Shown one piece after another: positions 2,617-40,679 of a stretch of DNA of 45,644 nucleotides. The DNA comes from Leucoraja erinacea (taxonomy: Eukaryota), in the NCBI RefSeq assembly GCF_028641065.1, contig NW_026576170.1, forward strand, positions 124,001 to 169,644. Reading direction: 5' to 3'. Under the pieces are notes generated by a model. The model did not search any database. It worked only from the letters and a program-made list of their open reading frames with translations, and was not told where the DNA came from. Made by a program: the position numbers and the translations under genes. Position 1 is the first letter of the stretch. The number at the start of each line of letters is the position of its first letter.

Positions 2617-2655
2617 AGTTATTGTACGAGGCCCCAGCCCACTCCCATCATTGTG
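2617..2655 (-). other. 23-RSS of V1
   Basis: Minus strand CACAATG, 23-bp spacer, ACAATAACT (consensus CACAGTG/ACAAAAACC). Confidence 0.9.
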
Positions 2656-2959
2656 AGCCTCAGTGCACAAAGATATACCGCCGTGTCAGACAGCTGCAAA
2701 TCCGAGATTGCCAAATAATACGTTTTGCTTGAACGCTGAACGTAATCAGAAATGCGGGTCCGAGCGAATTCTGCCCTGAAATCTAAATTGCCTTCGATGA
2801 AACGCCCGACCGCAACTTCCGGTCGCTTGCTTGGGTGCTGGCGGTACCAGAATAAGGAAGAAATATCGCTGGTGTATGTGCAGACTAAAGTTGCAGTTTC
2901 TCCTTCTGCCCTTGTCAGCGTGGGATCCCTCTGAGACACAACGTTTCCATTGCTCTGAC
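2656..2959 (-). CDS. TRAV/TRDV: TCR alpha/delta-type V exon (V1); open frame but leader looks defective, possibly ORF/pseudogene
   Basis: Splice acceptor ttccag|GT CAG AGC AAT. Translation GQSNGNVVSQRDPTLTRAEGETATLVCTY...LFWYRQ...YLAISDLQLSDTAVYLCALR has the conserved Cys, WYRQ and D-x-A-x-Y-x-C of an Ig V domain, followed directly by an RSS. Confidence 0.9.
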
Positions 2960-3211
2960 CTGGAACACAGTTGAAAAACGCGTGACATGGATCATTAGAT
3001 TGGATTTAAATAATGCTTGCAGGATTTGGGTGTGTCAGATTGCAACCTTCACGTGGTCCGCCCTGTTTCAACGAGTGCAATGAACCTGGCGTGCCACAAT
3101 CAAATAAGATCAAATAGAACACGTTGGCCTACAACTTTAGGCTGTGCACGCCATACGCAAGAATAAGAAGTAGCAGGATTCGGAGCGGGCAACAGCTGTG
3201 GAATAAATATA

Positions 3212-3526
3212 GGGCGGCACAGTGGTGCAGCGGAAGAGTTGCTGCCTTACAGCACTTACCTGGGTTCGATCCTGGCTACGGGTGCTTGTCTGTACGGAGT
3301 TGGTACGATTTTTTCCCGTGACCTGGGTGGGGTCTCTCCGAGCACTTCCGTTTCCACCCACAGTCTAAGACGTACAGGTTTGTAGGTTAATTGGCTTGGT
3401 ATAAACGAAAATTAAATGGCCCTCGTGCAGGATGGTATTAATGTGCGGGGATGGTTAGTCTGTGAGACCTCGGTGGGCCGAATGGCCTGTATCTGCGCTG
3501 TGTCTATAAACTAAATTAAACTAAAC
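3212..3526 (+). mobile_element. tRNA-derived SINE in the presumed V1 leader intron
   Basis: A-box-like cagtggtgcagcgg, B-box-like ggttcgatcc and a (taaac)n tail. Related copies at ~23100-23395 (-) and ~37613-37900 (+). Confidence 0.8.
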
Positions 3527-3651
3527 TTACGGAGGAGAATTGTGATTCATGGGTAAATAGGAATGCGCGAGCATCAATCCCAGGACATACCTCCACAACT
3601 CCCTTTGGCATACTCAACTTACATCCCCACATTTCACTCGCAGTGACCACC

Positions 3652-3683
3652 TATTTATACTGTGCCTGATACACTATTTGCAT
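3652..3683 (-). promoter_or_regulatory. Octamer + TATA promoter candidate for V1
   Basis: Minus strand ATGCAAAT (3676-3683), 16 bp, then TATAAATA (3652-3659). It lies upstream of a leader-like frame ELWRYVLGLMLAHSYLP (~3551-3601). Confidence 0.5.
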
Positions 3684-5225
3684 GAGTTTGTAACACTACA
3701 AAAAGCCACCCAAGCATTCCACATAATATTGTTCTCCTCTATATCCCGCTGGGTTTATCAGTTATGAGATATATAAGACCATAAGTTGAAATTACAACAC
3801 AGAACAGAGAATAGTGTAGCACATGAATAGATCCTTCAGCGCACAATATCCGTTTCGAGGATGACGTAGATAAACGGATCTAATTTGCCGCTTGTACCGT
3901 TCCCTGCCTAGCCACGTGCCGCTCCGTAAATCCTTAAATGCCACTATCTTACACGGCTCGACCACCGTACCTGTTTCATGTACACAGCACACTCTGTGTA
4001 AAAACAATACCTACACTACACCACTGCTTGAAATTTCGTCCCTCTCACCTTAACGCAACCCCCTCTTATTCTCGGGATTTCCACCCTGGGAAAAAAAATG
4101 TTCCCACAGGCTATGTGCCTCGTAATTTGATGTACTCCTATAAGGTCTCCAGCTTTCGACATTCCCGAGAAAACATTGCAAAGTTGTTTTTAAGTTCTCC
4201 TTATTGCTAATCCATGCAGCATGTTGGTAAATTTATACTGAGCTGGACCCTTTTCCTCTATGCAACACCTTGGTTAGCTGTTTGCTTACTGGACAATAAT
4301 ACCCCATTCATTCTGGTGGTAATAATCTAATGACGATTATAGAGACGTAGAGTGATACAGTGTGGAAACAACCCTTCGGCCCAATTTGCCCACATCGGCC
4401 TACAAGTCCCAGCTACATTCGTTCCACTTTTAAGTTGCAGAAATGGTGGTGGAAGGCGGTGGAAGGACGAACAGTTCTATAAATGTTTAACGGGGCATCT
4501 GATTTTTTTTAATGTCTTCTTTTTGACGATAAACCAAACTTCATAAAAAAAGATTTAATTTTCTTACCGATAATCAGTGCAACCAATGTAACGGGTGCAA
4601 ATAGTTGCATTTTAACTGCTCGCGGATACTATGATCGTTTGAGCGTCAAATTCGCATAGATAATCTCGCAACTGTTATAGCAATAAGAAGTACAAATAGC
4701 TGAGTACATTGGCTGAAGCTGGACTGATGTCATTTCCGTGCAGAACACCAATCAAAAGGATTCCACTGCGGTGAACAATTAATCCAATACATTTATATTT
4801 ATTTAGAACAACTCCCACAGTTATTAATGACAGAGAATAGTTAAACCTGCGTCATTAAACACATGGCTTCCACTGTGTTCTTTTCCACCAGATACAGTTA
4901 GGTAAAAACGTGAGACACAATTCGCAAGTTGACAAAGCCAACTGGACGCAAGTAGTTTGCGGGGCGAAGAACGCTGCAGTATAGGAGAGTCAGAGGGGAC
5001 ATTCGGTATGTGATGGCGCTCTCCAAATAACAACTCATGAGAGTATATTTCGTTGATTGTTTCAGTTGTATATCATGGCAGAATGGTAGGAATGCTTCAA
5101 AAAAAGACAGAGTAATCTCGAAACAAGGTTGTAATGAGATGACGGTTGTATTAATGTAGTGAGAGAGAATGGGGGAGTGAACCATTATTTATGAAAAAGG
5201 TGTGGCTCGTTTTAAAGATTTTGGC

Positions 5226-5244
5226 TAGCTCCATCTGCTGGCGA
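5226..5244 (-). promoter_or_regulatory. CTCF-like motif
   Basis: Minus strand TCGCCAGCAGATGGAGCTA. Confidence 0.45.
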
Positions 5245-7419: not shown

Positions 7420-7458
7420 AGTTTTTGTTCGGGTCCGTTATACGTCGGTGGCAGTGTG
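7420..7458 (-). other. 23-RSS of V2
   Basis: Minus strand CACACTG, 23-bp spacer, ACAAAAACT. Confidence 0.9.
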
Positions 7459-7938
7459 GGGTTCATGACACAGAAGTACACGGCAGATTCGGAGATCACG
7501 GACTTGCGGATCGTCAGCTCGGTATTCTTGGCAGTTTTATTGAACGTAGAAGAGATTCGGTCTGTGAGGTATCTCGTTCCAGTGTGTGTCCCCCTTGTAA
7601 TCTGAAGCAGGTAATACGGAGGCTGGCCAGGGCGCTGGATGTACCAGTAGACATATGGGTATGGATCGGTTGTTTTCAAGGTGCAGGTTAGGTTGATGTT
7701 ACATCCCTCTTCGGACATAATTTCTCCCACCAGTTGTTCCACTGAGTCTTGCAGGCTCCAATCGAATAAAGGCAATACAACTGTCATCAAGATTACCTTT
7801 CTCAAACAAGCTATTTTTATTCCAGCGAGATAAACATCCGTATTAATGAGGTCAAATGAACCCTGCAATTTTAATGGGAAGTAAATCCTCACTAAGAAGT
7901 AACGCAATGATAAGGAGCGGCGCTAATTGTGTCTTCAT
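7459..7938 (-). CDS. TRAV/TRDV: TCR alpha/delta-type V gene (V2): leader exon 7893-7938, V exon ~7459-7780
   Basis: 46-bp leader MKTQLAPLLIIALLL followed by a gtgagg donor. V exon DSVEQ...LTCTLK...YWYIQRPGQPP...ELTIRKSVISESAVYFCVMN, followed by an RSS. Confidence 0.9.
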
Positions 7939-11990: not shown

Positions 11991-13776
11991 TGACACCAGG
12001 ACTTTATTGCAAGATCGAAGAACAACACATCATCTTCCCCCGAGGCAAGGCGCAAATTTCTGAACATAACATATGAGTCTCTAACTCTACTAAATCTCTC
12101 TTCCTCGTCATTTGGAACACAATTGGGCATTTCGACGACTGTCTTGATTATATTGTCTCTCGTGAAAACGTTCCAAACTTGAAATGTCAAATCACAACAT
12201 CGTTCGGTCCAGAGAAATAAAATATCCTGACCTATACAGTCTCTCTCGGAATTCAACCTCTCCATTCCTGGCAAAAACGTTGTCATTAATACTCTGCCAC
12301 TCCCCAGATTAATGGTATCATCGCTAACATATTGCGATCTGAACAACATTGCACGCGCGGTCACGCCAACGTCCCAGAACAGATGGTTAAACTCCACTTA
12401 TGCCCAACTGCGTGTGACTCCTGCAGTGAAATAAGCCGACACCTCAAGCTGGCTGAGGGGAAACAAATCTTAACATCCACATTCAAATTTACTCGCATTG
12501 GTTGCAAGCAAATTGTTCATGAACAAGATGGAGAAAAGGCCATGTCTCTGTGCTGTGTAACATGCAACTACCACTTACAGTGAGAGTTGGTTCAATATAC
12601 CTGCCTCTCCCGTGAAGGAGAGTTGGCGCGGCGTCCCCTTTAAATATTTACCGCCTCATTTTAGACTTTTGCCCTCTTTTAGAGACCTACATCCGAGGAA
12701 CACAGTAAAATACCACAACTGATCTTCTTGTCATATGTTAACCCTCCACAACTCCTCCAGGTTTTGTTCGCAGCAGAGGGATAAGGCTTCTGCATTAGCC
12801 AGTCCATCTCACAATTCACACTCTCCAATATTAGTACCATTCTTATGAATAGAGTTGCATACTTAAATGAATCCTAAATGCACTATTTCGAAAAATAATA
12901 TCCCTCCCCCTGTGGTGTACTGCTCTGAAGTTTTTGTCAGTGAATTGCTTAGGTCGAGTGCAGCAAACAACACTTCTTTCTTGGGTCAAGACTTTCTTCA
13001 GGACGATCTATCCCCAAACATTTACAGCCGGTGAGATTCTCCTTAACCGATTCAATCACCTTGTACATCAACATACTTGACATCTCCAACGGATCATTGA
13101 ATTGAGAAGATTTCGCTCTAATATCTGGAATAACGTCAAAACTGTTCACCTCTGTGTTTTATGAATTAACACATTTCTTTAAAGATAATCTGTTGATCAA
13201 GAACATTTCTAGCCGCTGCATATTTCCAGTCAGTTGTCACATTACACATTATATTCGCCTATTCTTTACTTCATGAAGTGGCAACAGTTGAAATACATTA
13301 ATGCTGCTGTTGTAGCTGAATTGTATACGATGTCGTCTAGAAGGTTCCCTGTGGTTTACATCATTTAGACCCTGCCCAAAAATGATTATCTTTCCTTTTG
13401 AAAGGCAGCTCCACGGATAATGCAAGATGAAATCATTAATGGGTGCATGTTAAATGAAGGGAACGGTGTCTGGAAAATGCATTGCAAATGCGACAAGTAA
13501 TATATTGTATTACATCGTAGTATGTGTGGATAAATGCTACATTACACGTGTTTTGCTGCATCTGTGTGCCACCCGTTAAAATTTAAAAATAGAATGTTCA
13601 CTCGTATTTTACAGTTCCTTAGTTCTGTTGGTGCTCAGCTGGTGCCTGAGCAGCGGGCGGTCGCATAATGAGTTTGATCGCTTTGCATCACCTGGGAGCA
13701 AACTATTTGTTCAACGGTCCACAATAAATGTCCGCGGGGAGGTGAACGCACGCAGTCCTTCAGTTTTTTCTAAGAA

Positions 13777-13784
13777 TATAAATA
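13777..13784 (+). promoter_or_regulatory. TATA box, GPCR copy 1
   Basis: TATAAATA about 80 bp upstream of the ATG, conserved in copy 2. Confidence 0.6.
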
Positions 13785-13857
13785 TAGCGCTGTTTGCCAT
13801 CTCACTTTGACTCCTATAAGTTTTGCACTGCATAACTGCGGACGGCTTGAAGGAAAA

Positions 13858-16572
13858 ATGGGTTGGAAGCGGCACTTGGAAGTTGAATATTATTATTATC
13901 CAATTCTGGCAGCAATCGGAGTACCCGGTAGGTGAATGGAACGCAGTAAGTGGGACTGAGACGTGGGATGATGTGTTGGTAAAAGCATTGTTAAAGGTAA
14001 AGTGAAAATAGTGTGCGAAACACGGGGATGCTAGACTGCATTCTTCAGGTTAGGGCTGTATTAACTAGAAAATGTTTGTTTAAGAAATGACTGCAGTTGC
14101 TGGAGAAATCGAAGCTAGACAAAAATGCTGGAGAATTAGACAGCGGGTGAAGCGGCATCTATGAAGCGAAGGAATAAGTGACGTTTCGGGTCGAGACTGA
14201 TCAGTCTGAAGAAGGGTCTCGACCCGAAACGTCACCTATTCCTTTGTTAATCTACTGGATCGTTCGTCGTTCATTGGATCTGGCACAGGTTAATTCTCTT
14301 CAGATTCAGGTTTAGGTGCATTGTTGTCATGTCTCTCCGGGAGCTGCAAAAAGCATTGGTTTGCAAGAAATCCAAATTAGATCAAATAATATTAAATATC
14401 AGTACAAACAATTCAATCTCAGTAACAGGTAGTGTAAGAGGGGAAATCGGAGTGCAGAGCGTAGTTCAAGTTTGGGAGCGCACTGCAGCGTATCACATCC
14501 ACAAAGCCCAATGTCCGCAAGGGGATAGAGGTGAAACGGCAATACCCTGGCATATGGAAGAGCGGCTCAGAAGCCTGACAACAGAGGGGAAGAATCTGTT
14601 CTGGAGTCTGGTGGTGCGAGCTTTAAGCCTTCTGTATCTTCTGCCCGACGGGTGCAGGGAGTAGAAGGAATGAGCGGGGTGAGACATGTCTCCGTTTCCA
14701 AGGGATTGTGAAGTGCAAACGCAGTCAACAGTGCGGAGTCTATTTCGTAATAACGACCCGGCATCTTCCAGAACCCTGCGCAATTTACTCTTTATAGGGC
14801 ATATATCCCCACAACAAGCTGTGATACACCCAACAGTATGCGTTCTATGCTAATCTGTCGCAGCATGTTTGAGTAATCAGAGGCAGGTCAAAGTTCCTCA
14901 GACTTCTCAGTAAAGGTGTTGGTCTGCCGCTGGCTGTCCCTTCGATGTGGTCGTCCAACAAACATCGTTGGTAATACGAGGAACTTGACGCCCTCAATCA
15001 CTTCCACTTCAGCACCGTTGTTGCTGACCGGTGATCCACCGCATTTCCTGATATCGATAACTTGCTCCTTGGCCTCGTTGATACTGACATAGAGATTGTC
15101 ATCATCTGGGAGCTTGTGGGAGCAGTCACAGCCGCATTTGGCCGCGGGGTCGTGAGTGCATGGGAGGAAGAACCCGGAACCGGATGAGACGTCTTTATGC
15201 GGCACCGTTGTAGAGAATTATTGTGGAAGGGGTGTTATAACTACTACTCACTGATTAAGGTACGTTCATTAGAACATTAGAAGCTGGTGTGCTGATCGCT
15301 AGGCTCGGGAGCTTATCAATGGGTTGGATGGGAGTAGTGTTGGGAATGGGAATCTGACTTTCGACTCCTTGCTGCCCGGCTGTTCCCGGGAAGGGTTTAG
15401 GTCCAGGACGATGGCGTCTGATGCGGACATGTTGCTGCAATATGCAGTCTGCGGTGCAACAAGTGTGGCTGGGAGACAGCTTACGCTGCCTTCGTAGACC
15501 GCTGCTACGTAATCCGCACAGCTCCTTAGCACGCACCCATGTTTGTATGTGGGACAGTTTTTTTAGAACAAATAAGCAAAGCGTACCCAAGTTTGACCCC
15601 CGCCTCCAAATGAGCATCGCGTTTCCCTTACATGTAACGACAGTTTTCTCTTTTCCAGTGAACTTGCTGGCGATTGTGATCCTGTCCTGCAGAAATTGTG
15701 GTCTCTCCAAATGCACCACTCGGTACCTGGTGGCCATGGCGACGGCGGACCTCTTGGTGATCGTCTGCGAAGTGATATTACATCGGATTGCCGACCTTTC
15801 CTGGATGTACTCTTTCCTCTTCCACTATACTGTGTGCAGGTCCATTATATTCCTCGCTCCCGCGGCCGTTGCCTGTTCTGTTTGGCTTACGGTCGCTTTC
15901 ACATTTGATCGCTTTGTGGCCATTTCCACTCAGAATCTGAGAACCAGATACTGCACCGAGAGAACCGCGCTGGTGGTTATAGTGACCCTAACTGCGTTCT
16001 TCTGTTTACTGAACGTCCCCTGGCCCTTTGCGTACAATTATTATTTCAGGGATCAGCAGGGTACACAGTGGGGCTGCCTAATAAGATATCAGTTTTATGG
16101 CCAATCCTCGTGGATAGCATTTTCCTGGACTCAACAGCTGCTAGTCCCAGTCATTCCATTTTGTTTAATTATGCTGATGAACGTGCTCACAGTCAGACGC
16201 ATTTTAGTGGCCAGTCGTGTCCGCAGAAAACTCCGCGATCTCAGTAATGAGGACCCCGAGATCGCAAACCGCAGACGGTCTGTAATTTTACTCCTTGCAA
16301 TCTCCAGCAGTTTTATGGTGCTATGGGGCACAAATGTAGTATATTTCGTTTTCTATCGAATTACGAATGCATTTCGTGCCAGGGTGTTGATGAACCGATT
16401 TCCAACATTTGAACAAACTGGAATTCTGCTACAACTGTTGAGCACCTGCACAAACACGGTAATTTACACCGTGGCCCAGAGGAGGTTCAGAGAGCATCTG
16501 CTCCAGGTACTCATGTACCCCTTCACCCTAACTGTAAGCTTAATAAAATCGAGAAAACCTGGTGTAAAATAA
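13858..16572 (+). CDS. Class A (rhodopsin-like) GPCR, GPR139/GPR142-like, copy 1; exons 13858-13927 and 15659-16572; 327 aa
   Basis: Exon 1 MGWKRHLEVEYYYYPILAAIGVP with G|gtaggt donor joins in phase to ttttccag|TG AAC (VNLLAIV). Seven hydrophobic segments, GVPVN, YLVAMATADL, FDRF, TM3/ECL2 cysteines and NTVIY are present, with no stop codons. Confidence 0.92.
14080..14247 (+). mobile_element. Penelope-like palindromic element with minimal hammerhead core in GPCR1 intron
   Basis: CTGAAGA-A-GGGTCTCGACCC-GAAACGTC at 14206-14233. Confidence 0.65.
14300..15420 (-). mobile_element. Decayed Rex1/Babar LINE in GPCR1 intron
   Basis: Frame HPAHSFYSLHPSGRRYRRLKARTTRLQNRFFPSVVRLL is typical of a Rex1 ORF C-terminus. 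Counterpart at ~30130-30900 has a ~375-bp deletion. Confidence 0.8.
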
Positions 16573-17021
16573 CATTACAAATCCCTTTGTGAGTGAGTGC
16601 AAAAACTAGGTAATGAAGGAGTTTTGTCTGAAAGCTTTCCGCATAAATTTTCAAAAACATAGCTGAGAAATACAATCTGAACCTGCGTCCCCTGCACTGG
16701 AATGCATATTTGGCCATCTATTTAACATGCGACACGGGCGCGTTGTTCAAAGTGCCTAGTGGGAAGGGCGGCCATGTGGAACGAGTGCTATGTAGTACTG
16801 TAGCAGACCTCCAATGACTCCGGAATTGAGCCTCGCCGTTAACTGTTTCCACCTTCCTTTGAATCCAGGGGCAACGTCTCCAGCACGCAATGAAAACAGA
16901 CAGAGAGTTATGGTCCTAAACATTGCATGCTCCATTACTCTACAATTCTTTGAGACGTTCCATGTTTACGCATGTAAATGCCCAGTGCACCAATGTGTTT
17001 AATACAATTCTTCCTGCAACA

Positions 17022-17532
17022 TTTTAATTCAATTCAATACAATTCAATTCAATTCAATTCAATTCAACTTTATTGTCATTGCACAGATACAAGTATGGGT
17101 ACAACGAAATGCAGTTTAGCTCCAGTCCGTAGTAATAGTGCAATATAGAAATAAAACATACAGAATAAGCAAACAATGCGGACGGAGAGACTGGAGAAAT
17201 CTATCGGCGGGACTCCGAGTTCAGCAATGTGATAGTGTTCTTGTAGAAGCTGTTCCTCGTCCTACTAGTACGAGACCCGAGGCTCCTGTACCGCCTCCCT
17301 CATGGGAGGTGGGCAAACAGTCCATGGTTAGGGTGGGAGGGGTCTTTGATGAACTTCCCGGCCCGTCTCAGACACCGTTTTCGGTGCAGGGCATCCATGG
17401 CAGGGAGCGGGGCACCGATGATATACTGAGCGGTTTTCACCACCCGTTGTAGTGCCTTCCTGTCCGCTACGGTGCAACTGCTGTACCATACCGTGAAGCA
17501 GGTTGTCAGGATGCTTTCGATGGTACAGCGGT
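17022..17532 (-). mobile_element. Rex1/Babar LINE 3' fragment with (CAATT)n tail; copy-1-specific
   Basis: YRCTIESILTTCFTVWY...ALQRVVKTAQYI. Absent at the homologous site 32517. Confidence 0.85.
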
Positions 17533-17728
17533 ACGTTAATGAGAGTTCCATTTTATATTTGTTTCTCGCACTGAATGTAATGCCCCGTTGCTTCTTACAG
17601 ATGCGTTCGGTTTTCAGTACAATTAGTAATTCAGTGCCAGATGCAGCCAAAGGTAGTGAGTGGGTGTTATTCATACAAGTTGGCATTACTAATTATATTT
17701 TTAATGCAAGCAATGAGTAACAAGCGAG

Positions 17729-17797
17729 TGTCCAGTAGAGGGCGGTAAAGTGAGTAAGTTCACCTGAGTGGTAAAGAGATGCTGAATCGATTTGCAT
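17729..17797 (+). promoter_or_regulatory. CTCF-like motif + octamer, cassette copy 1
   Basis: TGTCCAGTAGAGGGCGGTA (17729-17747) and ATTTGCAT (17790-17797). Confidence 0.45.
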
Positions 17798-20280: not shown

Positions 20281-20405
20281 AACCGTGAGAACTTGCAAAA
20301 TCGTTACCGACAGCTACGACACTACGCCGCCTAATTTATTCCTAGCCTGTTCAACCTATCCTTTCAGCGATGTCACTGGAGGTAGTATAGTAGAGCTATG
20401 ATCTG

Positions 20406-28427: not shown

Positions 28428-29609
28428 GTGTTAATTGGCTTGATATAAAATGTTAAATTATCCAAGTTGGCGATATGCAGAGTACTGCCCTGCCTACTTC
28501 AAAATTCAGAAGGTTCAGTAGGTAATAACTGAACTGATCACCTTGTCATATTTTAACCCTCCATAACTCATCATGGTTTTGTTCGCTGCAGAGGGAAAAC
28601 AATTCTGCATTATTCAGACCCTCACACAATTCACACTGTCCAATACTAGTATCATTCGTGTGAGGAGAGTTGCATACTCCCTAGTTTAAATTGATCCTTA
28701 ATTCATTATTTCGAAAAATAATATCCCTGTTCCTGTGCTGTACTGCATTGTGACGTTTTTTTTCTGTGAATTCCTTAGGTCGAGTGCAGCAAACATGACA
28801 CTTCTTTCTTAGGTCAAATCTTTCTTCAGAATGATCTATCCCCAAATATTTACAGCCGATCAGACCCATTCAATTCGTTCTATCATCTTGCACATCAACA
28901 TTCGTGATATGATATCTCAAACGGATTAATGCATTGAGAAGATTTCGCCCTAATATCTGGAATAACACCAAAAGCTGTTCACCTCTGAGTTTTATGAATT
29001 AACAGGTGTCTTTAAACATAACCTGTTGATCAAGAATATTTCTAGCCGCTGTTTATTTCCAGTCAGTTGTCACGTTACACATTATATTCGCCTATTATTT
29101 ACTTCATGAAGTGGCAACAGTTGAAATACATTAATGCTGCTGTTGTAGCTGAATTGTATACGATGTCGTCTAGAAGGTTCCCTGTGGTTTACACAGTTTA
29201 GACCCTGCCAAAAAATGATTATCTTTCCTTTTGAAAGGCAGCTCCACGGATAATGCAAGATGAAATTATTAATGTGTGCATGTTAAATGAAGGGAACGGT
29301 GTCTGGAAAATGCATTGCAAATGCGACAAGTAATATACTGTATTACATCGTAGCATGTGTGGATAAATGATACATGACACGAATTTTGCTGCATCTGTGT
29401 GCCACGCGTTAAAATTTAAAAATAGAATGTTCACTCGTATTTTACAGTTCCTTAATTCTGTTGGTGCTCAGCTGGTGCCTGAGTAGTGAGCGGTCGCATA
29501 ATGAATTTGATCGCTTTGCATCACATGGGAGCAAACTATTTGTTCAACGGTCCACAATAAATGTCCGCGGGGAGGTGAACGCACGCAGTCCTTAAGTTTT
29601 TTCTAAGAA

Positions 29610-29617
29610 TATAAATA
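29610..29617 (+). promoter_or_regulatory. TATA box, GPCR copy 2
   Basis: TATAAATA about 80 bp upstream of the ATG. Confidence 0.6.
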
Positions 29618-29690
29618 TAGCGCTGTTTGACTTCTCACTTTGACTCCTATAAGTTTTGCACTGCATAACTGCGGACGGCTTGAAGGAAAA

Positions 29691-32062
29691 ATGAGTTGGA
29701 AGTGGCACTTGGAAGTGGAATATTATTATTATCCAATTCTGGCAGCAATCGGAGTACCCGGTAGGTCACGGGAACGCAGTAAGTGCGACTGAGATGTGGG
29801 ATGATGTGTTGATAAAAACAATGTTAAAGGTAAAGTGTAAATAGTGTGCGAAACACGGGAATGCTAGACTGCATTCTTCAGGTTAGGGCGGTATTAACTA
29901 GAAAATGTTTGATTAAGAAATTACTGCAGTTGCTGGAGAAATCGAATCTAGACACAAATGCTGGAGAATTAGACAGCGGGTGAAAGCGGCATCTATGAAG
30001 CGAAGGAATAGGTGACGTTTCGGGTCGAGACTGATCAGTCTGAAGAAGGGTCTCGACCCGAAACGTCACCTATTCATTTGTTAAGCTACTTGAACGTTGG
30101 TCGTTCATTGGATCTGGCACAGGTTAATTCTCTTCAGGTTTAGGTGCATTGTTGTCATGTATCTCTGGGAGCTGCAAAAAGCTTCGGTTTGCAAGAAATC
30201 CAAATTAGATCAAATAATATTAAATATCAGTACAAACAATTCATTCTCAGTAACAGGTAGAATAAGAGGGGAACTCGGAGTGCAGAGCGTAGTTCAAGTT
30301 TTGGAGCGCACTGCAGCGTATCACATCCACAAAGCCCAATGTCCGCAAGTGGATAGAGGTGAAACGGCAATGCCCTGGCATATCGAAGAACGGCTCAAAA
30401 GCCTGACAACAGAGGGGAAAGAGCTGTTCTGGAGTCTGGTGGAGCGAGCTTTAAGCCTTCTCCATTTTTTGCCCGACGAGAGCAGGAAGTAGAAGGAATG
30501 AGCGGGGTGAGACATGTCTCCGTTTCCAAGGGATTGTGAAGTGCGAACGCAGTCAACAGTGCGGAGTCTATTTCGTGATATGGACCCGGCGTCTTCCAGA
30601 ACCCTGTGCAATTTATTCTTTATAGGGCATAGATGGCCCCACAACAAGCTTTGTGCGGCACCGTTGTTGAGAATTATTGTGGAAGGGTGTTACCACTAAT
30701 TCTCTCGGTTTATTCTTTAGGAAGTTGAGTATCCATTCGCAAGCTGGTGTGTTGATCGCTGGGCTCTGGAGTTTATCAATGGGTTTGGATGGCAGAAGTG
30801 TTGAAGGCAAGTTCTCCAGCGGAGAAATGGGAATCCTACTTTCGACTCGTTTGTTGCCCGGCTGTTCCCGGGAAGGGTTTAGGTCCAGGACGATGTCGTC
30901 TGATGCGGACATGTTGCTGCAATATAGAGTCTGCGGTGCAACAAGTGTGGCTGGGAGACAGCTCACGCTACCTGCGTAGACCGCTGCTAACTAATCCGCA
31001 CAGCTCCTTGGCAAGCACCCAGGTTTGCATGTGGGCCAGTTGTTTTCGAACAAATAAGCAAAGCGTGCCTTAAATTGATCCCCGCCTCCAAATTAGCATC
31101 GCGTTTCCCTTACATGTAACTACAGTTTCCTCTTTTCTACACCCGCAGTGAACTTGCTGGCGATTGTGATCCTGTCGCGCAGAAATTGTGGTCTCTCCAA
31201 ATGCACCACTCTGTACCTGGTGGCCATGGCGACTGTGGACCTCTCGGTGATCGTCTGCGAAGTGATATTACATCGGATTGCCGACCTTTACTGGATGTAC
31301 TCTTTCCTCTTACACAATACTGTGTGCAGGTCCATTATGTTCCTCGCTCCCGCGGCCGTTGCCTGTTCTGTTTGGCTCACGGTTGCTTTCACATTTGATC
31401 GCTTTGTGGCCATTTCCACTCAGAATCTGAGAACCAGATACTGCACCGAGAGAACCGCGCTGGTGGTTATAGTGACCCTAACTGCGTTCTTCTGTTTACA
31501 GAACGTCCCCTGGCCTTTTGCGTACAATTATTATTTCAGGGATCGGCAGGGTACACTGTGGGGTTGTCGAATACGACGTCATTTTTATAGCCTATCCTCG
31601 TGGATAGCATTTTCCTGGACTCAACAGCTGCTAGTCCCAGTCATTCCATTTTGTTTGATTATGCTGATGAACGTGCTCACAGTCAGACGCATTTTAGTGG
31701 CCAGTCGTGTCCGCAGGAAACTCCGCGATCTCATTAGTGAGGACCCCGAAATCGCAAACCGCAGACGGTCCGTAATGTTACTCCTTGCAATCTCCAGCAG
31801 TTTTATGCTGCTCTGGGGCACAACTGTGTTATATTTCGTTTTATATCGAATTACGAATGCATTTATGTCCAGGGGGTTGAAAAACCCATTTGCAACATTT
31901 GAACAAACTGGAATTCTGCTACAACTGTTGAACACCTGCACAAACACGCTCATTTACACCGTGACCCAGAGGAAGTTCAGAGAGCATCTGCTCCAGGTAC
32001 TCATGTACCCCTTCACCCTAACTGTAAGCTTAATAAAATCGAGAACACCAGGTGTAAATTGA
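29691..32062 (+). CDS. Class A GPCR, GPR139/GPR142-like, copy 2; exons 29691-29760 and 31149-32062; 327 aa
   Basis: Same exon structure (MSWKWHLEVEYYYYPILAAIGVP|VNLL...). Intact, about 37 aa differences from copy 1 by manual count. Confidence 0.92.
29915..30077 (+). mobile_element. Penelope-like palindromic element with minimal hammerhead core in GPCR2 intron
   Basis: Identical core at 30040-30067. Confidence 0.65.
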
Positions 32063-32495
32063 CATTACAATACTAATCCCTCCGTGAGTGAGTGAAAAAA
32101 TTAGGTAATGAAGGTGTGTTCTCTGAAAAGTGTCCGCCTCAATTTTCAAAAAATATAGTTTAGAAATACAATGTGAACGCGTCCCCTGCACTGGTATGCA
32201 CATCTCGCCATCTATTTAACATGCGACACGGGCGAATTGTTCAAAGAGCCCAGTGGGGAGGGCGGCCATGTGGAACCGTGTGCTATGTTGTACTGGAGCA
32301 GACCTCCAATGATTCCGGAATTGAGCCTCGCCGTTAACTGTTTCCACCTTCCTTTGAATCCAGCGGCAACGTCTCCAGCACGCAATGAAAACAGACATAG
32401 AGTTATGGTCCTAAACATTGCATGCTCCATTACTCTACAATTCTTTGAGACGTTCCGTGGTTACGTATGTAAATGCCCAGTGCACCAATGTGTTT

Positions 32496-32501
32496 AATAA
32501 A
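32496..32501 (+). terminator. Candidate polyadenylation signal, GPCR copy 2
   Basis: AATAAA about 430 bp after the stop codon. Copy 1 has AATACA at the homologous site (17001). Confidence 0.3.
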
Positions 32502-32710
32502 ATTCTTGCTGCAACAGTTACGTTAATGAGAGTTCCATTTTATATTTGTTTCTCGCACTGAATGTGATGCCTCGTTGCATCTTACAGAGCCTTTCGCTTT
32601 TCAATACAATTAGTAACTCTGCACCAGATGCAACCAAAGGTAGTGGGTGTTATTGATACAAGTTGGCATTACACATTATATTTTTAATGCAAGCAGTGTG
32701 TAACAGCGAG

Positions 32711-32781
32711 TGTCCAGTAGAGGGCGGTAAAGTGAGTAAGTTCGCCTGTGTGGTAAAGATATGCTGAAAATCGATTTGCAT
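32711..32781 (+). promoter_or_regulatory. CTCF-like motif + octamer, cassette copy 2
   Basis: Identical TGTCCAGTAGAGGGCGGTA and ATTTGCAT. Confidence 0.45.
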
Positions 32782-33056
32782 TAATGTCCCACCTCCTTTG
32801 ATGCAGCGCCGACGCTGGAGCTCTGCCTATTTGAGATTCGAGGGAGTGGGCAGAGAGTCGGATTTATCTCCTCTTGCAGGGCAAGATAATGTGAGAAATC
32901 CATTAATTTATTTTCACCACCGATGGCGGCTGAGATTTGTATAGCTCCAAATTTGAGTTGAGTACTCTCTCCCCAAATCCTCCGCTCCCGACGCGATAAC
33001 GATTACATTTTTACATATTCTGATTGACGTTTATCCCCTCGAGGCCGTGAATACAC

Positions 33057-33452
33057 ACCTTCACTGGATATTTTATGCTTTATTTCTTGACAAATTTCTG
33101 ATTCAAAGTAAGTAAGAAGTTTAAAAACATCAAAATACTTTGAATTTAAATCGACCAGCTGCAACTGATGACGTCGCAATGGCTCGGCTAGCAGTGATCA
33201 GCTTCCCTGAATATTTCATCCTATATTTAACGTTATTCGCGATTAAAGCATTAAAAAGGCCAACTTTCATAAGATTTTACATATCCTGATCCACACTTAT
33301 CTCCTACATATAGAGAGCACCTTCGCTGACCATTTTATGCTTTATTTCTCGACATTACTGATTAAAGTTTTAATAAAAATCAAAAGATTGAATATAAAAC
33401 TACTAGCTTCAACTGATGACGTCACGATGGCTCGGCTAGCAGTGATCAGCTT
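33057..33452 (+). repeat. Local direct repeat (~140 bp x2) containing a CRE (TGACGTCA)
   Basis: 33057-33206 resembles 33319-33452. Copy 1 has a single unit (18067-18201). Confidence 0.75.
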
Positions 33453-33869
33453 CACTTACGTTCAGGAACGGCTTGAGTTGGAGGACCACGCCTCCTGTGG
33501 TGGCTACGGGTAGGGAACGGGTGCGTTGGGGGAGCGACCCTTTCGACCCTCTCAAAACTTTACATACCTCAACCAGAGCTTCCTGCATTCTCCGACATTC
33601 CCGAGGGAAAGAATCCAGATATGACCAATCTCTCTTCCTGCACCGCTAATCCAGCCACCATTCCGGTAAATGAGCAACTGCGACTCTAAAAACGCTGTAC
33701 TTAGTAAATGTGTCCGTCTTGCCGAATTGGCAAATGCTGCTGGTGGTCACTTTGCTGCTGGTCACCAATTTGTACAGCGTGCAAGTTTAGTTAGTTTACG
33801 TTAGTTAGTTTACGGCAGGTGTCCATAGAGTAGCATGTCAGAACTTTAATTTTCCCAACGGTCGGTTCT

Positions 33870-34320
33870 AACCGGTATGGCTGGACTGACATATGTTGAA
33901 ATAATGGAGCGACTGGGCTTGTATATACTGGAAATTAGAAGGATGAGAGGGCATTTTATTGAAACATATAATGTCATTGAGGGTTTGGACACGCTCGAGG
34001 CAGGAAACATGTTCCCGATGTTGGGGGAGTCCAGAACCAGGGCCACTGTTTAAGAATAAGGGGTAAGCCATTTAGATGGAGATGCGACCACAAATCTTCA
34101 CACAGAGAGTAATGAGTCTGTGGTATTCTCTGCCTCAGACGGTGGTGGAGACCGGTTCTCTGGATAATGTCAAGAGCGAGCTAGATAGGGCTCTTAAAGA
34201 TAGCGGAGTCAGGGGATATAAGGAGAAGGCAGGAACGGGGTAGTGATTGGGGATGATCACATTGAATGACTGTGTTGGCTAGGAGGGCCGAATGGCCTAC
34301 TCCTGCACCTATTGTCTATT
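33870..34320 (+). mobile_element. CR1 3' fragment
   Basis: Same family as 5800-6525. Inverted counterpart at 44620-44870 and 45603-45644. Confidence 0.85.
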
Positions 34321-36609
34321 GAAAATAAGCTAATCAGCTAATTTCCATCTGTGTCCTATCACAGGACCTTCTCTCTCCGCTTCCAGCCCCATAAACTAAT
34401 TTATTGCACAAACACATGTGTTACTTTTTAAGCTAGGGGGCTCGACTGTGGCAAGTAAATTAACAGGCACGATCCTCGGCAACGTGCAGGATCGTTTCGT
34501 TGAACATCTCCGCTCAATTCGCCTAAAACAGCATGATCTCCCGCTTGCTAAATAACCTACAACCTATTCTTAAACTGCGGTCCCTAGGTCTTGACTCTCT
34601 CAACATCGGGGACATGGTTCCTGCCTCCGACGTGTCCAATCCCTTGATAATATTTTATGTTTCAAATAGATTCCCTCTCGTCCTACTAAATTCCATTGTA
34701 TACAAGCCCCGCCGCTCCATTGTATCCAGATATGATAGTCCCGCCATCCCGGGAATTAACCTGGTGAACCCACGGTGCACTCCCAACCCACGGTACACTC
34801 CTTCAATAGCAAGAATGTCGTTCCTCAAATCTGGAGATCAAAACTGCACACACTACTCCTGGTGTTGTCTCACTAGGGCCCTGTACAACTGCAGAAGGAC
34901 CTCTTTGCTCCTATACTCAACTGCGCTTGTTATGAAGGCCAACGTGCAATTAGCTTTCTTCACTGCCTGCTGTACCTGCATGCTTACTTTCCGTGAGTGA
35001 TGTACAATGACCCCAGGTGATACCCATCACCTTCTCAAGTGCAAAAGTTTCCCTCCCGTTCCTGTTAAATATTTCCCCTCTCACCATTAACCTAATTCCT
35101 CTGGTTCCCGATTCTCCAACTCTGGGCAAAGGACACGATACGAGATACATTTATTTGTCACATGTACCAGCTGCTACAGTGAAATGTGTGGTCAACATAC
35201 AGCCATACAATAAAATAAAGAACACAACACACGATAGAGTCCAACATAAAATATCCCTACACAGCAGAATCAAAGTTTCCCACTGTGATTCTCGCGTGAT
35301 TCACGTTGTCCGATCCGCTAATGATCTCGTACACTGCGCCTCCTGCGCCCAATGAAAATAGGCTCAAGAAATCAGAGATCCGCTGTGGACACAGGCCCTT
35401 CGTCCCATACAATCAGCGCTTACCAACGATCACCCCAGACAGCAGCATTCTACTACAAGCTGGAGAATAGGTACAATTTACAGACATTAAAAATAAACTA
35501 TATTTCTGTACGTATTTCGAGTCTGGGAGGAAACCGGAGCACCCGGAGAAAACCCAGGCGGTCATCGGAATCAGAGTCAGAATCAGCATGCCGTTTATTG
35601 TCATTGAAACACAGGCTCAAACGAAATTACGGTCCTGCAGTCATACCAACAATAAAAAAACAATACACTAAATTAACACAATTCCACACAAAGATCCATC
35701 ACAGTGATTCTCCAAACACCCCCTCACTGTGATGGAAGGAAAAAGTATTTTATCTTCGCTGTTCTCGGTTCTTTATTCTTCTCCCACAGTCAAGCAGTCA
35801 AACTGCTGCATCGATCTGATCGAGGCTTTTTATGTTAGAGCCCTCAGCGGTTGACGGTAAGTCCAACGTCCGTTGAAACCGCGCCGGGCGATATAAGGAC
35901 CTGCTACGGGTCGATTTAATCCTCTCGATTCGGTCGGGAGAAGTTACCGTTGCGGGAGCTCCAAAAAGAGGTCTCCTACCAGGGACCTGCGAGCTCCCGC
36001 TGTTACCGTCCACAGAGCCTGCAGACGGAGACTCCGAAGCTCCGAAGTCCTAGTCCGCAGGCTCCGCGACTGGAGACCCAGGTCGATTCCGGTTGGAGGC
36101 CGTCGGCTGCACAATGTTGGGCCCCAACGACAACGGAGACTTGACAGGGAAAAGGTCGAATATTCGTACAGGGAAGAGATTTAAAAGCCCCCCCCCCCCC
36201 CCCCCCCACCTCCACCCCCCCCCCCCCCCCCCCCCCCACACACCCACATATACACAGCTAAAAAGTATATAAAACGGAACCAAAACAAACACCAAACGAG
36301 ACAAGAAGAAGGAAAAGACAGACGTACAGCAGAGGCCGCTGCCGCGAGGCGCCGCCATCTTGTCCAATCGTCAGAACTTGCAACATCGATACTGACAACA
36401 CGGTACTCAGGTTCTAACCCGGGTCTCCGACAGTGTAATGCCTCTGTCCCACTTAGGACACTTGAACGGAAAACTCTGGTGACCTTGCCCGCAACCCAAG
36501 GTTTCCATGAGGTCGCCAGATGTTTTGGTTACTCGCCTGGAAAGCCTCGAGCTCGATCGACCGAAGCGTGAGCTGCGTCTACCGACCAAAGATCATACAC
36601 GACGACCCA

Positions 36610-36610
<1 letters not shown>

Positions 36611-36667
<57 letters not shown>
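36611..36667. repeat. (CA)n microsatellite at the inversion junction
   Basis: About 28 CA units, directly followed by sequence inverted from 24308. Confidence 0.95.
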
Positions 36668-36669
<2 letters not shown>

Positions 36670-38029
36670 TTCACACAGCTACCCAGCTTTGTGTCATCTG
36701 CACATTTGCTAATGTTATTTGTGACCCCTTAGGTGGGAGGTAAAATTGTGTAATTTGTGTAAACATTATTGAATGTATGTTTAGCTTCCGAGAATGTCGG
36801 ATGGGGGTTTTGTAAGGATCATGTATTGTACATATTTATTTCTCGAATAAACTATATATTTCGAAATCCAAAGAATTGACGCACTATGACTGTTCCCACA
36901 ATTCACAATAATCCCAGTTGTTTTTCCCATAGTCGAGGTCAGTGAAGGCGGAACTGTTTCCATGTAAAGACCCAGTCAAATGTTGCGATTTCACACCTTA
37001 TGGCTGCTCCTCCCCAATTGCCCTGATATCCACGCCACTCCGCGAGCAGGTGAGCGAGAGTGCATTTCAATTATCGTCCAATCTCCAGTGGTTTGTTTCC
37101 ATGATGGACAACATGTTGTATGGTTAGCATATTCGAAAATATTATTTATGGGCCATTGTTGGCATATATTTTCTTCGATTTTGGAGATATATTTTCAATG
37201 TGAATATCAATATTAATTTGAATCTGAGACCCCTGGCCGCATGAACCAGTCGGGGTTATGGCAATGTTAGCCGTTGGTAGCAATAATGTTTATGTATTTT
37301 GCATAAGTATATTATTTTAAATGTTTGTGAGCTGCTGACTGTTCACGTGGTTGAGGCGACGCTGAAACTACACAGAGTGAACGATGCGCGGTCTAATAAT
37401 GTTGCCGCTGGAGACAGAAAGATGCCGCCATACTGCCTGACCACGAACCGAATTCAGGCAGCAACGGTCGGTGCGCAGAATGCAGATCACTAGGCCACTC
37501 GATACACTGCTGCAACTCATGGAAATTACAAACCTATTTTTCCGGCTAGCTGTGGTTATATTTCAACAATCACCCAGCTGCACGCTTTTAAAAACAAATC
37601 ACACGTTTTGTCGGCACAGTGGCGCAGCTGCTGCTGCCTCAAAGCTTCAGACACCCGGGATCAATCCTGTACTCGGGTAATGTCTGAGTGTAGTTTTCCC
37701 GTCTCGCTGTGACCGTGTAGGTATCGTCCAGGTGCTCTGATTTCCTCCCGTATGCCCAATACGTGTGTTTGTTTTAGGTTAATTGGCCTCTGTAAACATG
37801 CACCAAGTGTGTAAGGAATAGATGGAAAGGTGGAATAACACGGAACGAAAGTGATCGGGTCATCGATGGTCGGCGTGGGCTCGGCGGGGTGAGGTCCTCA
37901 GGAATTAATTTCATATGCCAAAACATGGCAGATGTAGGGGAGTGGAACTGAACACATTCATTGAAAATGGCTCCTTGCACATCCTTCTGGCTTTGCTTGT
38001 AATTTACTTCACTTATTTACTTATTTTCC

Positions 38030-38828
38030 TCGGTAATCATGAAATGCTTCGAGAGGCTGGTGAAGAAACACATCTGCGCCTTCCTCCCTCGCAACATAGA
38101 CCTGTTACAGTTCGCATACCGTCCGAACAGATCCACGGACGATGCGGTCTCCCAGGTTTTGCACACCGCTCTCTCCCATCTGGACAGCCAGAAGGGGGGC
38201 TACGTGAGGATGTTGTTCATACACTTCAGTTCAGCCTTAAACACGATAGTCCCCACCAGACTGGACGAGAAGCTACTGGAATTAGGGCTCAACACCCCAC
38301 TGTGTGCCTGGGCCCTGGACTTTCTCGCCGCCAGGCCCCAGGTAGTCAAGATGGGAGGAAATACATCGAAGTCCCTCACCCTGAGCAAAGGATCGCCCCA
38401 GGGTTGCGTCCTCAGCCCCCTATTTTACTCCCTGTACACACATGACTGTGTGGCTAGGTTCAGCTCCAACTCAATAATCAAGTTTGCTGATGACACTGTG
38501 GTAGTGGGCCGGATCTCAGACAACGATGAGAAGGCCGACCGATAGGAGGTGGCTGATCTAGCACTCTGGGGTCAGGACAACAGCCTCCGATTGAACATCA
38601 AAAAACTAAGGAGCTGATCATGGACTTTAGGAGGGCACATCATCCTATGACGTACACACCATTGAGCATAAATGGGGATACTGTGGATAGGGTGAACTCT
38701 TTTAAATATCTGGGAGTCCACATCTCTGAGGATATGACATGGACATCACACGCCGCAGCACTTTTCATTTCACTCACATCTCGTACGTGTATGTGACGAA
38801 TAAACTTGACTTGACTTGACTTGACTCG
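38030..38828 (+). mobile_element. Rex1/Babar RT fragment with (GACTT)n tail; copy-3-specific
   Basis: [31 protein letters not shown] and KFADD motifs. Absent at the homologous site ~23005. Confidence 0.9.
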
Positions 38829-39010
38829 TGTAGAAATCACATGCATTTCTCAATGTATACATCAAAACATCGTAATAATTCCCATTTTCTCCACACGGCC
38901 GAAGCGACTGCACATCTGCCCGTAGCCTTTGGACGGATGACGTTAATACTGTGTTGTTTCTTTTTAGAATCGTGGCATCATAGAGTCTTATTGCGTGGAA
39001 ACACACCCTT

Positions 39011-39545
39011 AGAAACATAGAAACATAAAAATAGGTGCAGAAGTAGGCTATTCGGCCCTTCGAGCCTGCACCGCCATTCAATATGATCATGGCTGATCAT
39101 CCAACTCAGTATCCTGTACCTGCCACCTCTAACTCCCTCTTGAATATAGCCAATGAACTGGCCTCAACTGCCTTCTGTGGCAGAGAATTCCAGAGATTCA
39201 CCACTCTCTGTGTGAAAAATGTTTTCCTCATCTCGGTCCTAAAAGATTTCCCCCTTATCCTTAAACTGTAACCCCTTGTTCTGGACTTCCCCAACATCGG
39301 GAACAAGGTTCCTGCATCTAATCTGTCGAACCCCTTAAGAATTTTGTAAGTTTCAATAAGATCTCCCCTCAATCTTCTAAATTCTAGCGCGTACAAGTCG
39401 AGTCTATCCAGTCTTTCTTCATATCAAAGTCCTGACATCCCAGGAATCAGTCTGGTGAACCTTCTCTGTACAAAAATGTCTGTCTTCAGATTAGGAGACC
39501 AAAACTGTGCACAATACTCCAGGTGTGGTCTCACCAGGACCCTAT
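39011..39545 (-). mobile_element. CR1 3' fragment with 8-bp TSD; copy-3-specific
   Basis: TSD ACACCCTT at 39003-39010 and 39546-39553. Empty site at ~22815-22830. Confidence 0.88.
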
Positions 39546-40170
39546 ACACCCTTCGGCCCAAATTGCCCACACCAGCCAACATGGTCCATCTTCACTAGTC
39601 CTACCTGCATGCATTTCGTCCATATCCTCAACATCCGTTCTATCCATGTATATGTCAACGCTCTTCATAAACTCTGCGACTGTGCCTGCCTTAACTACTA
39701 CCTCCGGCAGCTCGTTCCAAGCGCCGCCCCCTTTGTATGAAAAAGTTACCCTTCAGGTCTCTATTAAATCTACTCCCCACTCACTTTGAATCTATGTTCT
39801 CTGTTTCTCGATCCACCTAATCTGGCCAAGAGACTCTGTGAGTTTACCCAATCTATTCCATTTGTGAATATGCACCTTATTATTGTTTCGCGTAACAATC
39901 TCAGGCTTCGCACCATCACTGCCGGTTACAAGAACAAATATGCCTTCCTCAATCACGGTTTATTCAAGCGGATGCGAATACTCTCGGGGGGAAGCTGGAT
40001 TCTGGCTACGTGTATTTTAATTGGCTGAGACCCAGCTGCCCACGCACATCTCTGACTCCAATCACTGGGGGCACACCGCAGTGACAGCGAACATCCGGAG
40101 ACCAGCAGACACGATCCAGTTTTTGTCTCTTCAAGTTTCGAACTGAGCTAGTACATAGTGAACGGGTAAA

Positions 40171-40641
40171 ATGCGTTTCATCGGCATCTGTGTTGTGTGG
40201 GGAGCGTTTCTCACAGGTAATTCTGGATCAATATTTTCAGTTCCCCTCGCCCTTCTCAGTGAGATTTTGGCTTGAGAAGTGCAATCTCATGGCACTCCGG
40301 TGTCTGTTACTATCTCAATATATTTATTTTACAGTCACCATTCACGGAGAATCTGTCACACAGCCACTGCCCTCTGCGACGAAGACAAAAGGAGAAGCGG
40401 TGACTTTAACCTGTAACTATGATACCACATGGACAACATATGCTTTATTGTGGTACCGACAATATCCAGGCATGCAGCCCGAGTTTACTATGTCGAGAGA
40501 CACCAGCAACAATGAAGATAAGGCCCAATACGCTGATACTCGTTTCTCTATTGAGCTCAATACCGCGACTAAGTTCACCAGCTTGAGTATCTCAGGGCTG
40601 GATCTCAGCGACTCTGCAGTCTATTACTGCGCACTGGGGCG
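40171..40641 (+). CDS. TRAV/TRDV: TCR alpha/delta-type V gene (V4), inverted paralog of V3: leader 40171-40216, V exon 40335-40641
   Basis: Same leader peptide and splice sites as V3. Intact V domain with 6 aa differences from V3. Confidence 0.95.
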
Positions 40642-40679
40642 CACAGTGATGGAAACAAGTTAAGCCCCTTACAAAAACA
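40642..40679 (+). other. RSS of V4 (22-bp spacer)
   Basis: CACAGTG atggaaacaagttaagcccctt ACAAAAACA. Confidence 0.95.

Follow-up and report, generated by a model that had tools for sequence, protein, structure and literature searches.

Genes for GPR139-related receptors co-duplicated with V segments in a probable T-cell receptor alpha/delta-type array of the skate Leucoraja erinacea

In this study, we report the analysis of a 45.6-kb stretch of genomic DNA from the skate Leucoraja erinacea (here called the window, meaning the whole stretch analysed), in which two genes for G-protein-coupled receptors, GPCR1 and GPCR2, lie interleaved with four variable (V) segments of T-cell receptor (TCR) alpha/delta type, V1 to V4. 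One cassette of ~12 kb, containing a GPCR gene and a V segment, was duplicated as a unit, with a neutral divergence of ~0.09 in both halves. The window is probably part of a TCR alpha/delta-type V array carrying co-duplicated, still-selected passenger GPCR genes, and the anatomy of the locus, the co-duplication, the constraint on the receptors and their placement in a family are described below. The order of the features is V1(-), V2(-), GPCR1(+), V3(-), GPCR2(+), V4(+), and all six were found in the order and orientation claimed for them in an earlier note on this DNA, which had been made from the sequence alone. Each GPCR lies 5-8 kb from the nearest V segment, GPCR1 being head-to-head with V2 and tail-to-tail (convergent) with V3, 5 kb away, and no tie of GPCR transcription to V germline transcription is visible in the sequence. 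We infer, as the default reading, that the GPCRs are passengers with no functional connection to the TCR.

Duplication of the GPCR and V cassette

Self-comparison of the window revealed that 12709-20312 is copied directly at 28524-36397 with 87-91% identity, and that 18797-24307 is copied in inverted orientation at 43330-36665 with 68-91% identity depending on the segment (86-91% in the V-bearing part). Copy 1 is laid out as a GPCR block, a repeat (R) and a V block, and copy 2 as a GPCR block, R, an inverted V block and an inverted R. Repeat R, of ~1.5 kb, forms an inverted pair flanking the V4 block (34904-36458 on the plus strand and 41643-43330 on the minus strand) and is present as a single copy beside the V3 block (18797-20312, plus strand). 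The junction between the two blocks of copy 1 (20312/20843) recurs inverted at 41701/41505 in copy 2. Neutral distance in the GPCR half was 0.089 for the intron, 0.086 and 0.092 for the flanks and 0.082 for synonymous sites (dS), and in the V half 0.079 and 0.094 for the flanks and 0.094 for dS. The earlier suggestion that the receptors share the evolutionary dynamics of the V repertoire is thus supported by the co-duplication of a GPCR and a V segment as one cassette whose two halves show the same neutral divergence.

The simplest history would be a single duplication of the cassette, after which the V half was flipped between the inverted repeats, or in the course of which the inverted layout arose, and repeat R is a plausible substrate for the inversion of the V4 block. 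Repeat R also holds G-rich low-complexity open reading frames (ORFs). GPCR genes trapped in a V array, each with its own TATA promoter, two exons and an intact 327-codon frame, would be amplified by the same block duplications through which the V repertoire grows, and they would stay selected as receptors, with the seven-transmembrane (7TM) core and intracellular parts kept and the extracellular, ligand-facing part diverging.

The region upstream of GPCR exon 1 (13111-13536 and 28932-29371) has a further copy of ~71% identity at 24450-24884, which no GPCR coding sequence follows and which is either left over from an older cassette or an independent repeat.

V segments and their recombination signals

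The pattern CACANTG, 22-23 nt and ACAAWAAC of a recombination signal sequence (RSS) was matched exactly four times in the 45.6 kb, each time at the end of a V exon (2655-, 7458-, 21708- and 40642+), compared with a mean of 0.003 matches in shuffled sequence (300 shuffles). The statement that every V segment carries an RSS was accordingly reproduced, all four V exons being directly abutted by one; the spacer in V3 and V4 is of 22 or 23 nt, depending on the placement of the nonamer. Pfam V-set was matched by all four V exons (E 7e-14 to 4e-13), and the framework Cys...WY(R/I)Q...Y(L/F/Y)C is kept in each of them. The leader exons of V2, V3 and V4 are 46 nt long (15 codons plus 1 nt), encode a hydrophobic peptide and end in a GT donor, and their phase-1 split is typical for antigen-receptor V genes. 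The segments form three families (V1, V2 and V3/V4) with 29-43% identity between families. The V3/V4 pair gave a dN/dS ratio (omega) of 0.33, with changes in the regions of complementarity-determining regions 1 and 2 (CDR1/CDR2).

Comparison of V1-V4 with named TRAV proteins gave E values of 1e-10 to 5e-22, and the TCR chains of solved structure that were matched were all either alpha chains or chains with a delta V (V-delta-1). In the search with V3, the matches naming a receptor chain were all TRAV or TRAV/DV, the majority of matches being unnamed Ig-like domain proteins; NCBI V proteins of sharks or rays were absent from its results, in which the unnamed NCBI clusters were cyprinid. A region-restricted search for full-length skate TCR chains using the 232-aa V2 ORF gave no match, a blank that is uninformative. 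From the V-set, structure and named-TRAV matches, the TCR alpha/delta identity proposed in the earlier note appears to be correct in the sense of TRAV/TRDV-like, an assignment drawn from similarity matches, with TRBV, TRGV and IGV controls in no tree.

A tRNA-derived Deu-like short interspersed element (SINE) of ~310 bp is located at ~3212-3525 on the minus strand, in the position expected for a leader, ~250 bp upstream of the V1 exon. The leader of V1 may have been lost, and the segment may be of ORF type or disabled. The coordinates of all features are listed in Table 1.

Table 1. Features of the window and their coordinates
Feature	Coordinates	Strand	Remarks
V1 RSS	2617..2655	-	heptamer CACAATG (2655-2649), 23-nt spacer, nonamer ACAATAACT (2625-2617)
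V1 V exon	2656..2959	-	TRAV/TRDV-like; CAG acceptor, phase 1
V2 RSS	7420..7458	-	CACACTG, 23-nt spacer, ACAAAAACT
V2 V exon	7459..7747	-	acceptor 7748/7747 or 7742/7741, phase 1 either way
V2 leader exon	7893..7938	-	MKTQLAPLLIIALLL + 1 nt; GTGAGG donor
Cassette copy 1	12709..24307		GPCR block 12709-20312, then V block 20843-24307
GPCR1 TATA box	13777..13786	+	TATAAATATA, 72 nt upstream of ATG
GPCR1 exon 1	13858..13927	+	70 nt = 23 codons + 1 nt; encodes a short N-terminus plus the first half of TM1; donor GTAGGT
GPCR1 exon 2	15659..16572	+	914 nt, N1.50 to stop; CAG acceptor; Pfam 7tm_1 E 8e-19
V3 RSS	21671..21708	-	CACAGTG, 22/23-nt spacer, ACAAAAACA
V3 V exon	21709..22015	-	named matches TRAV/TRDV
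V3 leader exon	22134..22179	-	MRFIGICVVWGAFLT + 1 nt
Cassette copy 2	28524..43330		direct GPCR block and inverted V block
GPCR2 TATA box	29610..29619	+	TATAAATATA, 72 nt upstream of ATG
GPCR2 exon 1	29691..29760	+	70 nt; GTAGGT donor
GPCR2 exon 2	31149..32062	+	914 nt; CAG acceptor; Pfam 7tm_1 E 1.5e-16
V4 leader exon	40171..40216	+	peptide identical to V3 leader
V4 V exon	40335..40641	+	94% amino-acid identity to V3
V4 RSS	40642..40679	+	CACAGTG, 22/23-nt spacer, ACAAAAACA
Reverse-transcriptase/LINE-like ORFs	5997-6416, 10470-10829, 18497-18874, 26137-26457, 27378-27686, 38039-38545, 43619-44257, 44846-45574	both	by eye

Structure of the GPCR genes

Two long ORFs, 15421-16572 and 31148-32062, encode 7tm_1 domains whose start lies inside the first transmembrane helix (TM1). 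The sequence upstream of the GPCR2 ORF is out of frame and contains a stop, and a pyrimidine tract with a CAG acceptor is kept in both GPCR copies; the coding region must therefore be spliced. The missing 23 codons were located by tblastn at 13858-13926 and 29691-29759, using full-length relatives such as a 326-aa protein of Amblyraja (P0010). When the exons were joined in a local script, both models gave 327 uninterrupted codons and a final stop, in agreement with the spliced length of 327 aa given earlier, and the intact frames, splice sites and TATA box described in the earlier note are present in both genes. An unspliced GPCR1 starting from an in-frame ATG at 15611 was considered and rejected, as GPCR2 has ATT at this position together with a frame-breaking 10-nt length difference, and both copies keep the acceptor. 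Exon 2 was used as the query in the database searches, and the joined 327-aa model was used for the local frame check, the dN/dS analysis and the tree.

The database match to GPCR1 with 100% identity was P0001, which NCBI names 'probable GPR139 [Leucoraja erinacea]'. The NCBI model (318 aa; 15736-16551, ~17600-17681 and 19629-19781 of the window) starts at an internal Met, is without the 70-nt exon 1, and has its last residues replaced by two repeat-derived downstream exons at ~17.6 kb and 19.63-19.78 kb. P0001 is probably a mis-model, and the two-exon model supported by homologues is the better one, by which the public gene model for the GPCR1 locus is corrected. The sequence of at least the last 3' exon of P0001 is repeated at 35.7 kb and 42.2 kb of the window.

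A Logan contig of 1,270 bp (P0002) represents a third close paralogue or an allele, which is 88% identical to GPCR1 and nearer to GPCR2, and which was translated straight through the boundary of the intron and exon 2. P0002 shows that further copies of the GPCR1/2 subfamily exist in public reads.

The gaps between the V and GPCR genes are crowded, on both strands, with ORFs whose translations look by eye like reverse transcriptase or long interspersed elements (LINEs; Table 1). An Rfam scan of the window gave no match.

Constraint on the receptors

Identity between GPCR1 and GPCR2 is 94% for DNA and 88.7% for protein, with a dS of 0.082, a dN of 0.055 and an omega of 0.68. No indel was found in 984 bp of coding sequence, against 7.1 expected (P 9e-4) from the flanks and intron, in which there were 20 events in 2,789 aligned bp, and the chance of the frame staying open after 58 random substitutions was 0.10. 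The extracellular third, comprising the N-terminus, extracellular loops (ECL) 1 and 2 and the tops of TM6-ECL3-TM7 as set from motif positions and not from a solved structure, makes up 31% of the protein and holds 23 of the 37 amino-acid differences (p 7e-5). Omega was 0.92 in this third and 0.42 elsewhere (p 0.039 versus neutrality).

Across 33 members of the subfamily to which both genes belong, the class-A switches N1.50, D2.50, the C3.25-ECL2 disulphide, D-R-F, P5.50, W6.48, N7.49 and Y7.53 are invariant, the family-specific variants being DRF, T6.50 and N-T-x-x-Y, and entropy is greater in the extracellular parts (p 7e-10). This pattern is that of working receptors with a diverging ligand-facing surface.

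At position 5.42 (residue 182 of GPCR1), Glu is found in 28 and Asp in 3 of the 33 members, and Gln in GPCR1 and GPCR2; position 6.51 is Asn in GPCR1 and Thr in GPCR2. These two positions are possible candidates for ligand-specificity switches.

Family placement

The earlier proposal of an expanded family was supported by the database searches, in which 927 proteins of a 90%-clustered collection were related at E<=1e-5 and all 120 matches listed were chondrichthyan (sharks, rays, skates and Callorhinchus). In a 50%-clustered library, 94 clusters were found at E<=1e-30, and 946 of 1.84 billion representatives at E<=1e-3. GPCR1 and GPCR2 are 60-67% identical to shark and ray members of the family, with which they share the exon-1 peptide ...YYP(I/V)LAAIGVP and the same 70-nt first exon with its short N-terminus. 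Both genes are unexceptional members of an orphan receptor family with a very large expansion in cartilaginous fishes. In the ESM Atlas, the matches were confined to generic clusters named 'probable GPR139' and to further 7tm_1 clusters with lineage-specific expansion; our literature search found no paper on a cartilaginous-fish 'GPR139-like' expansion or its link to a TCR V array, and the salamander TRA/TRD papers mention no such GPCR.

In a quick tree, GPCR1 and GPCR2 were placed within an elasmobranch subfamily clade with 99% support, whose branching follows the species tree (batoids, squalomorphs and two galeomorph groups, with Callorhinchus as sister). Within the chondrichthyan proteins that NCBI names 'probable G-protein coupled receptor 139', GPCR1 corresponds to P0001, and both genes are nested in this well-supported subfamily. 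Their nearest skate relatives are two genes of Amblyraja radiata (P0010 and P0019) on a chromosome of 131.3 Mb. Among the rows sampled, the subfamily occupies one to five contigs per species and one or two in most, with two each in Amblyraja and Heptranchias and up to five small unplaced contigs in Mustelus, and 8 of the 10 members in Heptranchias are on a single 29.8-Mb scaffold. The family as a whole was found, among the matches listed, on at least 14 contigs in Heterodontus francisci and on as many in Heptranchias perlo. The genome-wide scatter that the earlier note would have counted against a link with the TCR locus is therefore seen for the whole family, which is on many chromosomes, but not for the GPCR1/2 subfamily, which in the same sample is confined to few contigs per species.

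Relation to GPR139, GPR142 and olfactory receptors

Membership of class A is indicated by the 7tm_1 profile and the microswitches. Human GPR139 was the best or joint-best match of solved structure (E 5e-7 to 6e-6, ~29-32 bits), level with the cholecystokinin (CCK-A/B) receptors. The agonist pocket of GPR139 consists of F109(3x33), H187(5x43), W241(6x48), R244(6x51) and N271(7x38) (PMC5430874). Only one of these five residues, the generic toggle W6.48, is kept in GPCR1 and GPCR2, where F109, H187, R244 and N271 align to P, Q (E in most subfamily members), N/T and I, respectively. Orthology to GPR139 or GPR142 was ruled out by the CCK-level similarity and the replacement of four of the five pocket residues, and the GPR139/142-like name that the genes had been given holds only as a distant family label.

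The nearest relatives outside the chondrichthyans, at 24-31% identity, are 'probable GPR139' proteins of the coelacanth, salamanders, a few teleosts and amphioxus; of these, the coelacanth and salamander proteins matched human GPR139 at 2e-18 and 3e-13, with GPR139 clearly ahead of the neurotensin receptors. The skate receptors resemble GPR139 and GPR142, both orphan class-A receptors of vertebrates with aromatic amino acids as ligands, in their structural match, in the common loss of the NPxxY proline with a TM7 motif LL(N/S)T...N...Y, and in being joined to them through this intermediate 'GPR139-like' clade. They differ in having T for P6.50 and in occurring as dozens of chondrichthyan copies per genome, versus one conserved gene. 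Because the similarity to GPR139 is weak and its pocket is largely replaced, the two receptors belong to a broad GPR139-related branch of class A, being neither GPR139 nor GPR142, and their ligand probably differs from the aromatic amino acids of GPR139.

Identity as a vertebrate olfactory receptor (OR) was rejected, as the only Pfam match at E<=0.01 was 7tm_1, with no match to 7tm_4, and an intron in TM1 splits the coding region.

Predicted consequences of rearrangement

Deletional V-to-J joining of V3, or of a more distal minus-strand V segment, would excise GPCR1 in T cells. If the joining (J) segments lie toward lower coordinates, the use of V3 or a more distal V would remove GPCR1, V2 and V1 together. 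The inverted V4 would instead join by inversion, which would retain the intervening DNA.

Evidence against the proposed reading and alternative explanations

Several observations weigh against the window being part of a TCR alpha/delta-type V array with still-selected passenger GPCRs. The scaffold is an unplaced contig of 169.6 kb, and no diversity (D), J or constant (C) segments were found within the window, so that membership of a functional TRA/TRD locus is indicated by V type and RSS only. The V segments are of mixed orientation, the 1.6 kb upstream of V1 yielded no plausible leader exon, and the copy-2 inversion is known from the assembly. The overall omega of the two GPCRs is not significantly different from 1 (rough chi-square, p ~0.17), and passenger status is a default reading. 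On the side of expression, four raw-read RNA runs of coded tissues, three from the same species and one from a related organism, were mapped on 13801-19800. In three runs GPCR1 exon 1 was free of reads, and in the fourth (X12) its depth was ~0.5; exon 2 had a handful of reads (~1.5x in two bins of one run), and the joint of the two exons was found in none of the four.

The orientation of the mates on exon 2 fits plus-strand RNA if the library is stranded as usual, one run had a depth of ~2x across the intron/exon edge of GPCR1, and all deep coverage in the mapped region was on repeats. Among indexed RNA runs, none containing GPCR1 was found. The trace reads neither show nor exclude expression of GPCR1 and are no evidence of silence; receptors of such kind are often restricted to a rare cell type. 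Within the GPCR1 intron, a ~45-nt element at 14200-14245 had very deep RNA coverage in all four runs (mean 355-1580 per strand in a 200-nt bin), is flanked on either side by loose ends, shows opposite-strand joints, and looks like a short motif common to many transcribed repeats and not like local transcription.

Some of these points would also be expected if the V segments were orphons, that is, copies scattered away from the working TRA/TRD locus that duplications of a GPCR cluster have spread and that take no part in rearrangement. The unplaced scaffold, the lack of D, J or C in the window, the mixed orientations, and V1 without a leader and with a SINE upstream are all in line with such a cluster, but the RSSs are intact in all four segments, the leaders and frames of V2-V4 are intact, the V3/V4 pair differs in the CDR1/CDR2 regions and has an omega of 0.33, and three V families are neighbours, which is the arrangement of a true V array. 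We consider an orphon cluster unlikely.

The interleaving might alternatively reflect functional coupling, the idea of the earlier note, in which the GPCRs are immune receptors of lymphocytes kept in the V array for its chromatin opening or enhancers. GPCR and V are indeed interleaved and duplicated as one unit, and the subfamily is on one or two contigs in most of the species sampled. However, both GPCRs are equipped with a TATA promoter of their own, 72 nt before the ATG, GPCR1 and V3 are convergent and 5 kb apart, the four RNA runs are almost empty for GPCR1, and the wider family lies on so many contigs in Heterodontus and Heptranchias that residence in the TCR locus is not needed for it. 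Moreover, deletional V-J joining would destroy the GPCR in the very cells that are supposed to use it. Coupling is therefore improbable, and passenger genes in a V array remain the reading that we prefer.

That the interleaving or the inverted V4 block is an assembly artefact of mis-joined repeats is very unlikely: the scaffold is unplaced and the inverted block is bounded by ~1.5-kb inverted repeats, a classic site of orientation errors, but the adjacency of GPCR and V blocks occurs in two copies ~9% diverged, which are thus paralogues and not a collapsed or duplicated read set, and the junction of copy 1 recurs inverted in copy 2. There is equally little to suggest that the GPCRs are decaying pseudogenes, recent dead duplicates still without stops, for although the overall omega and the scarcity of RNA reads would allow it, the coding sequence is free of the indels expected, core omega is 0.42, the substitutions are non-random and concentrated in extracellular parts, and every class-A microswitch, the splice sites, the ATG and the TATA box are kept in both copies.

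Comparison with known loci and significance

In mammals, OR genes are found between the first TRAV genes, namely OR10G2 and OR4E2 in human and three Olfr genes (Olfr1507-1509) in mouse, with conserved synteny in sheep (PMC4574546). The earlier note had rightly named ORs as residents of the mammalian TRA/TRD locus but had placed them at its 5' end; being interspersed among TRAV genes (PMC4574546), they are a closer precedent for the skate layout than it had assumed. In both cases, rearranging TRAV segments are interspersed with class-A 7TM genes from an expanded family. The skate GPCRs belong to another family, with no 7tm_4 match and an intron inside TM1, the coding regions of ORs being a single exon, and differ further in that the skate GPCR is part of a repeated GPCR and V cassette.

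Trypsinogen genes in mammalian TRB are unrelated functional genes that have multiplied in tandem within the locus and disappear from the chromosome on deletional V-DJ joining. The skate genes are likewise unrelated genes embedded in an antigen-receptor locus, and the predicted loss of GPCR1 on V joining would be a parallel; locus and gene type are different, and co-duplication of passenger and V is observed in the skate. Class-A receptor genes between TRAV segments were thus already known, and what is new is the GPCR family and the co-duplication of GPCR and V as one cassette.

The findings extend the mammalian layout of ORs among TRAV genes to a cartilaginous fish, with a different GPCR family. 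They indicate that an unrelated receptor gene still under constraint can be taken along and multiplied by the block duplications of a V repertoire, which offers antigen-receptor loci a concrete way of seeding other gene families, and they point to a large, apparently undescribed expansion of orphan GPCRs in sharks, rays and chimaeras. These animals have very small OR repertoires (PMC11979771). A wider and quite speculative reading, which we regard as a long shot, is that the elasmobranch 'GPR139-like' genes are a repertoire-type sensory or chemoreceptor family partly filling the gap left by tiny OR, TAAR and V1R sets, one ancient subfamily of which would have resided in the TRA/TRD V array since before the split of sharks and rays, been multiplied together with V segments and been lost somatically from T cells through V(D)J joining. 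This reading draws on the dozens of copies per genome, the very short N-terminus and the variation at the ligand-facing surface. If true, a GPCR family serving as a sensory repertoire in animals with very few ORs would be the most interesting possibility raised by this locus.

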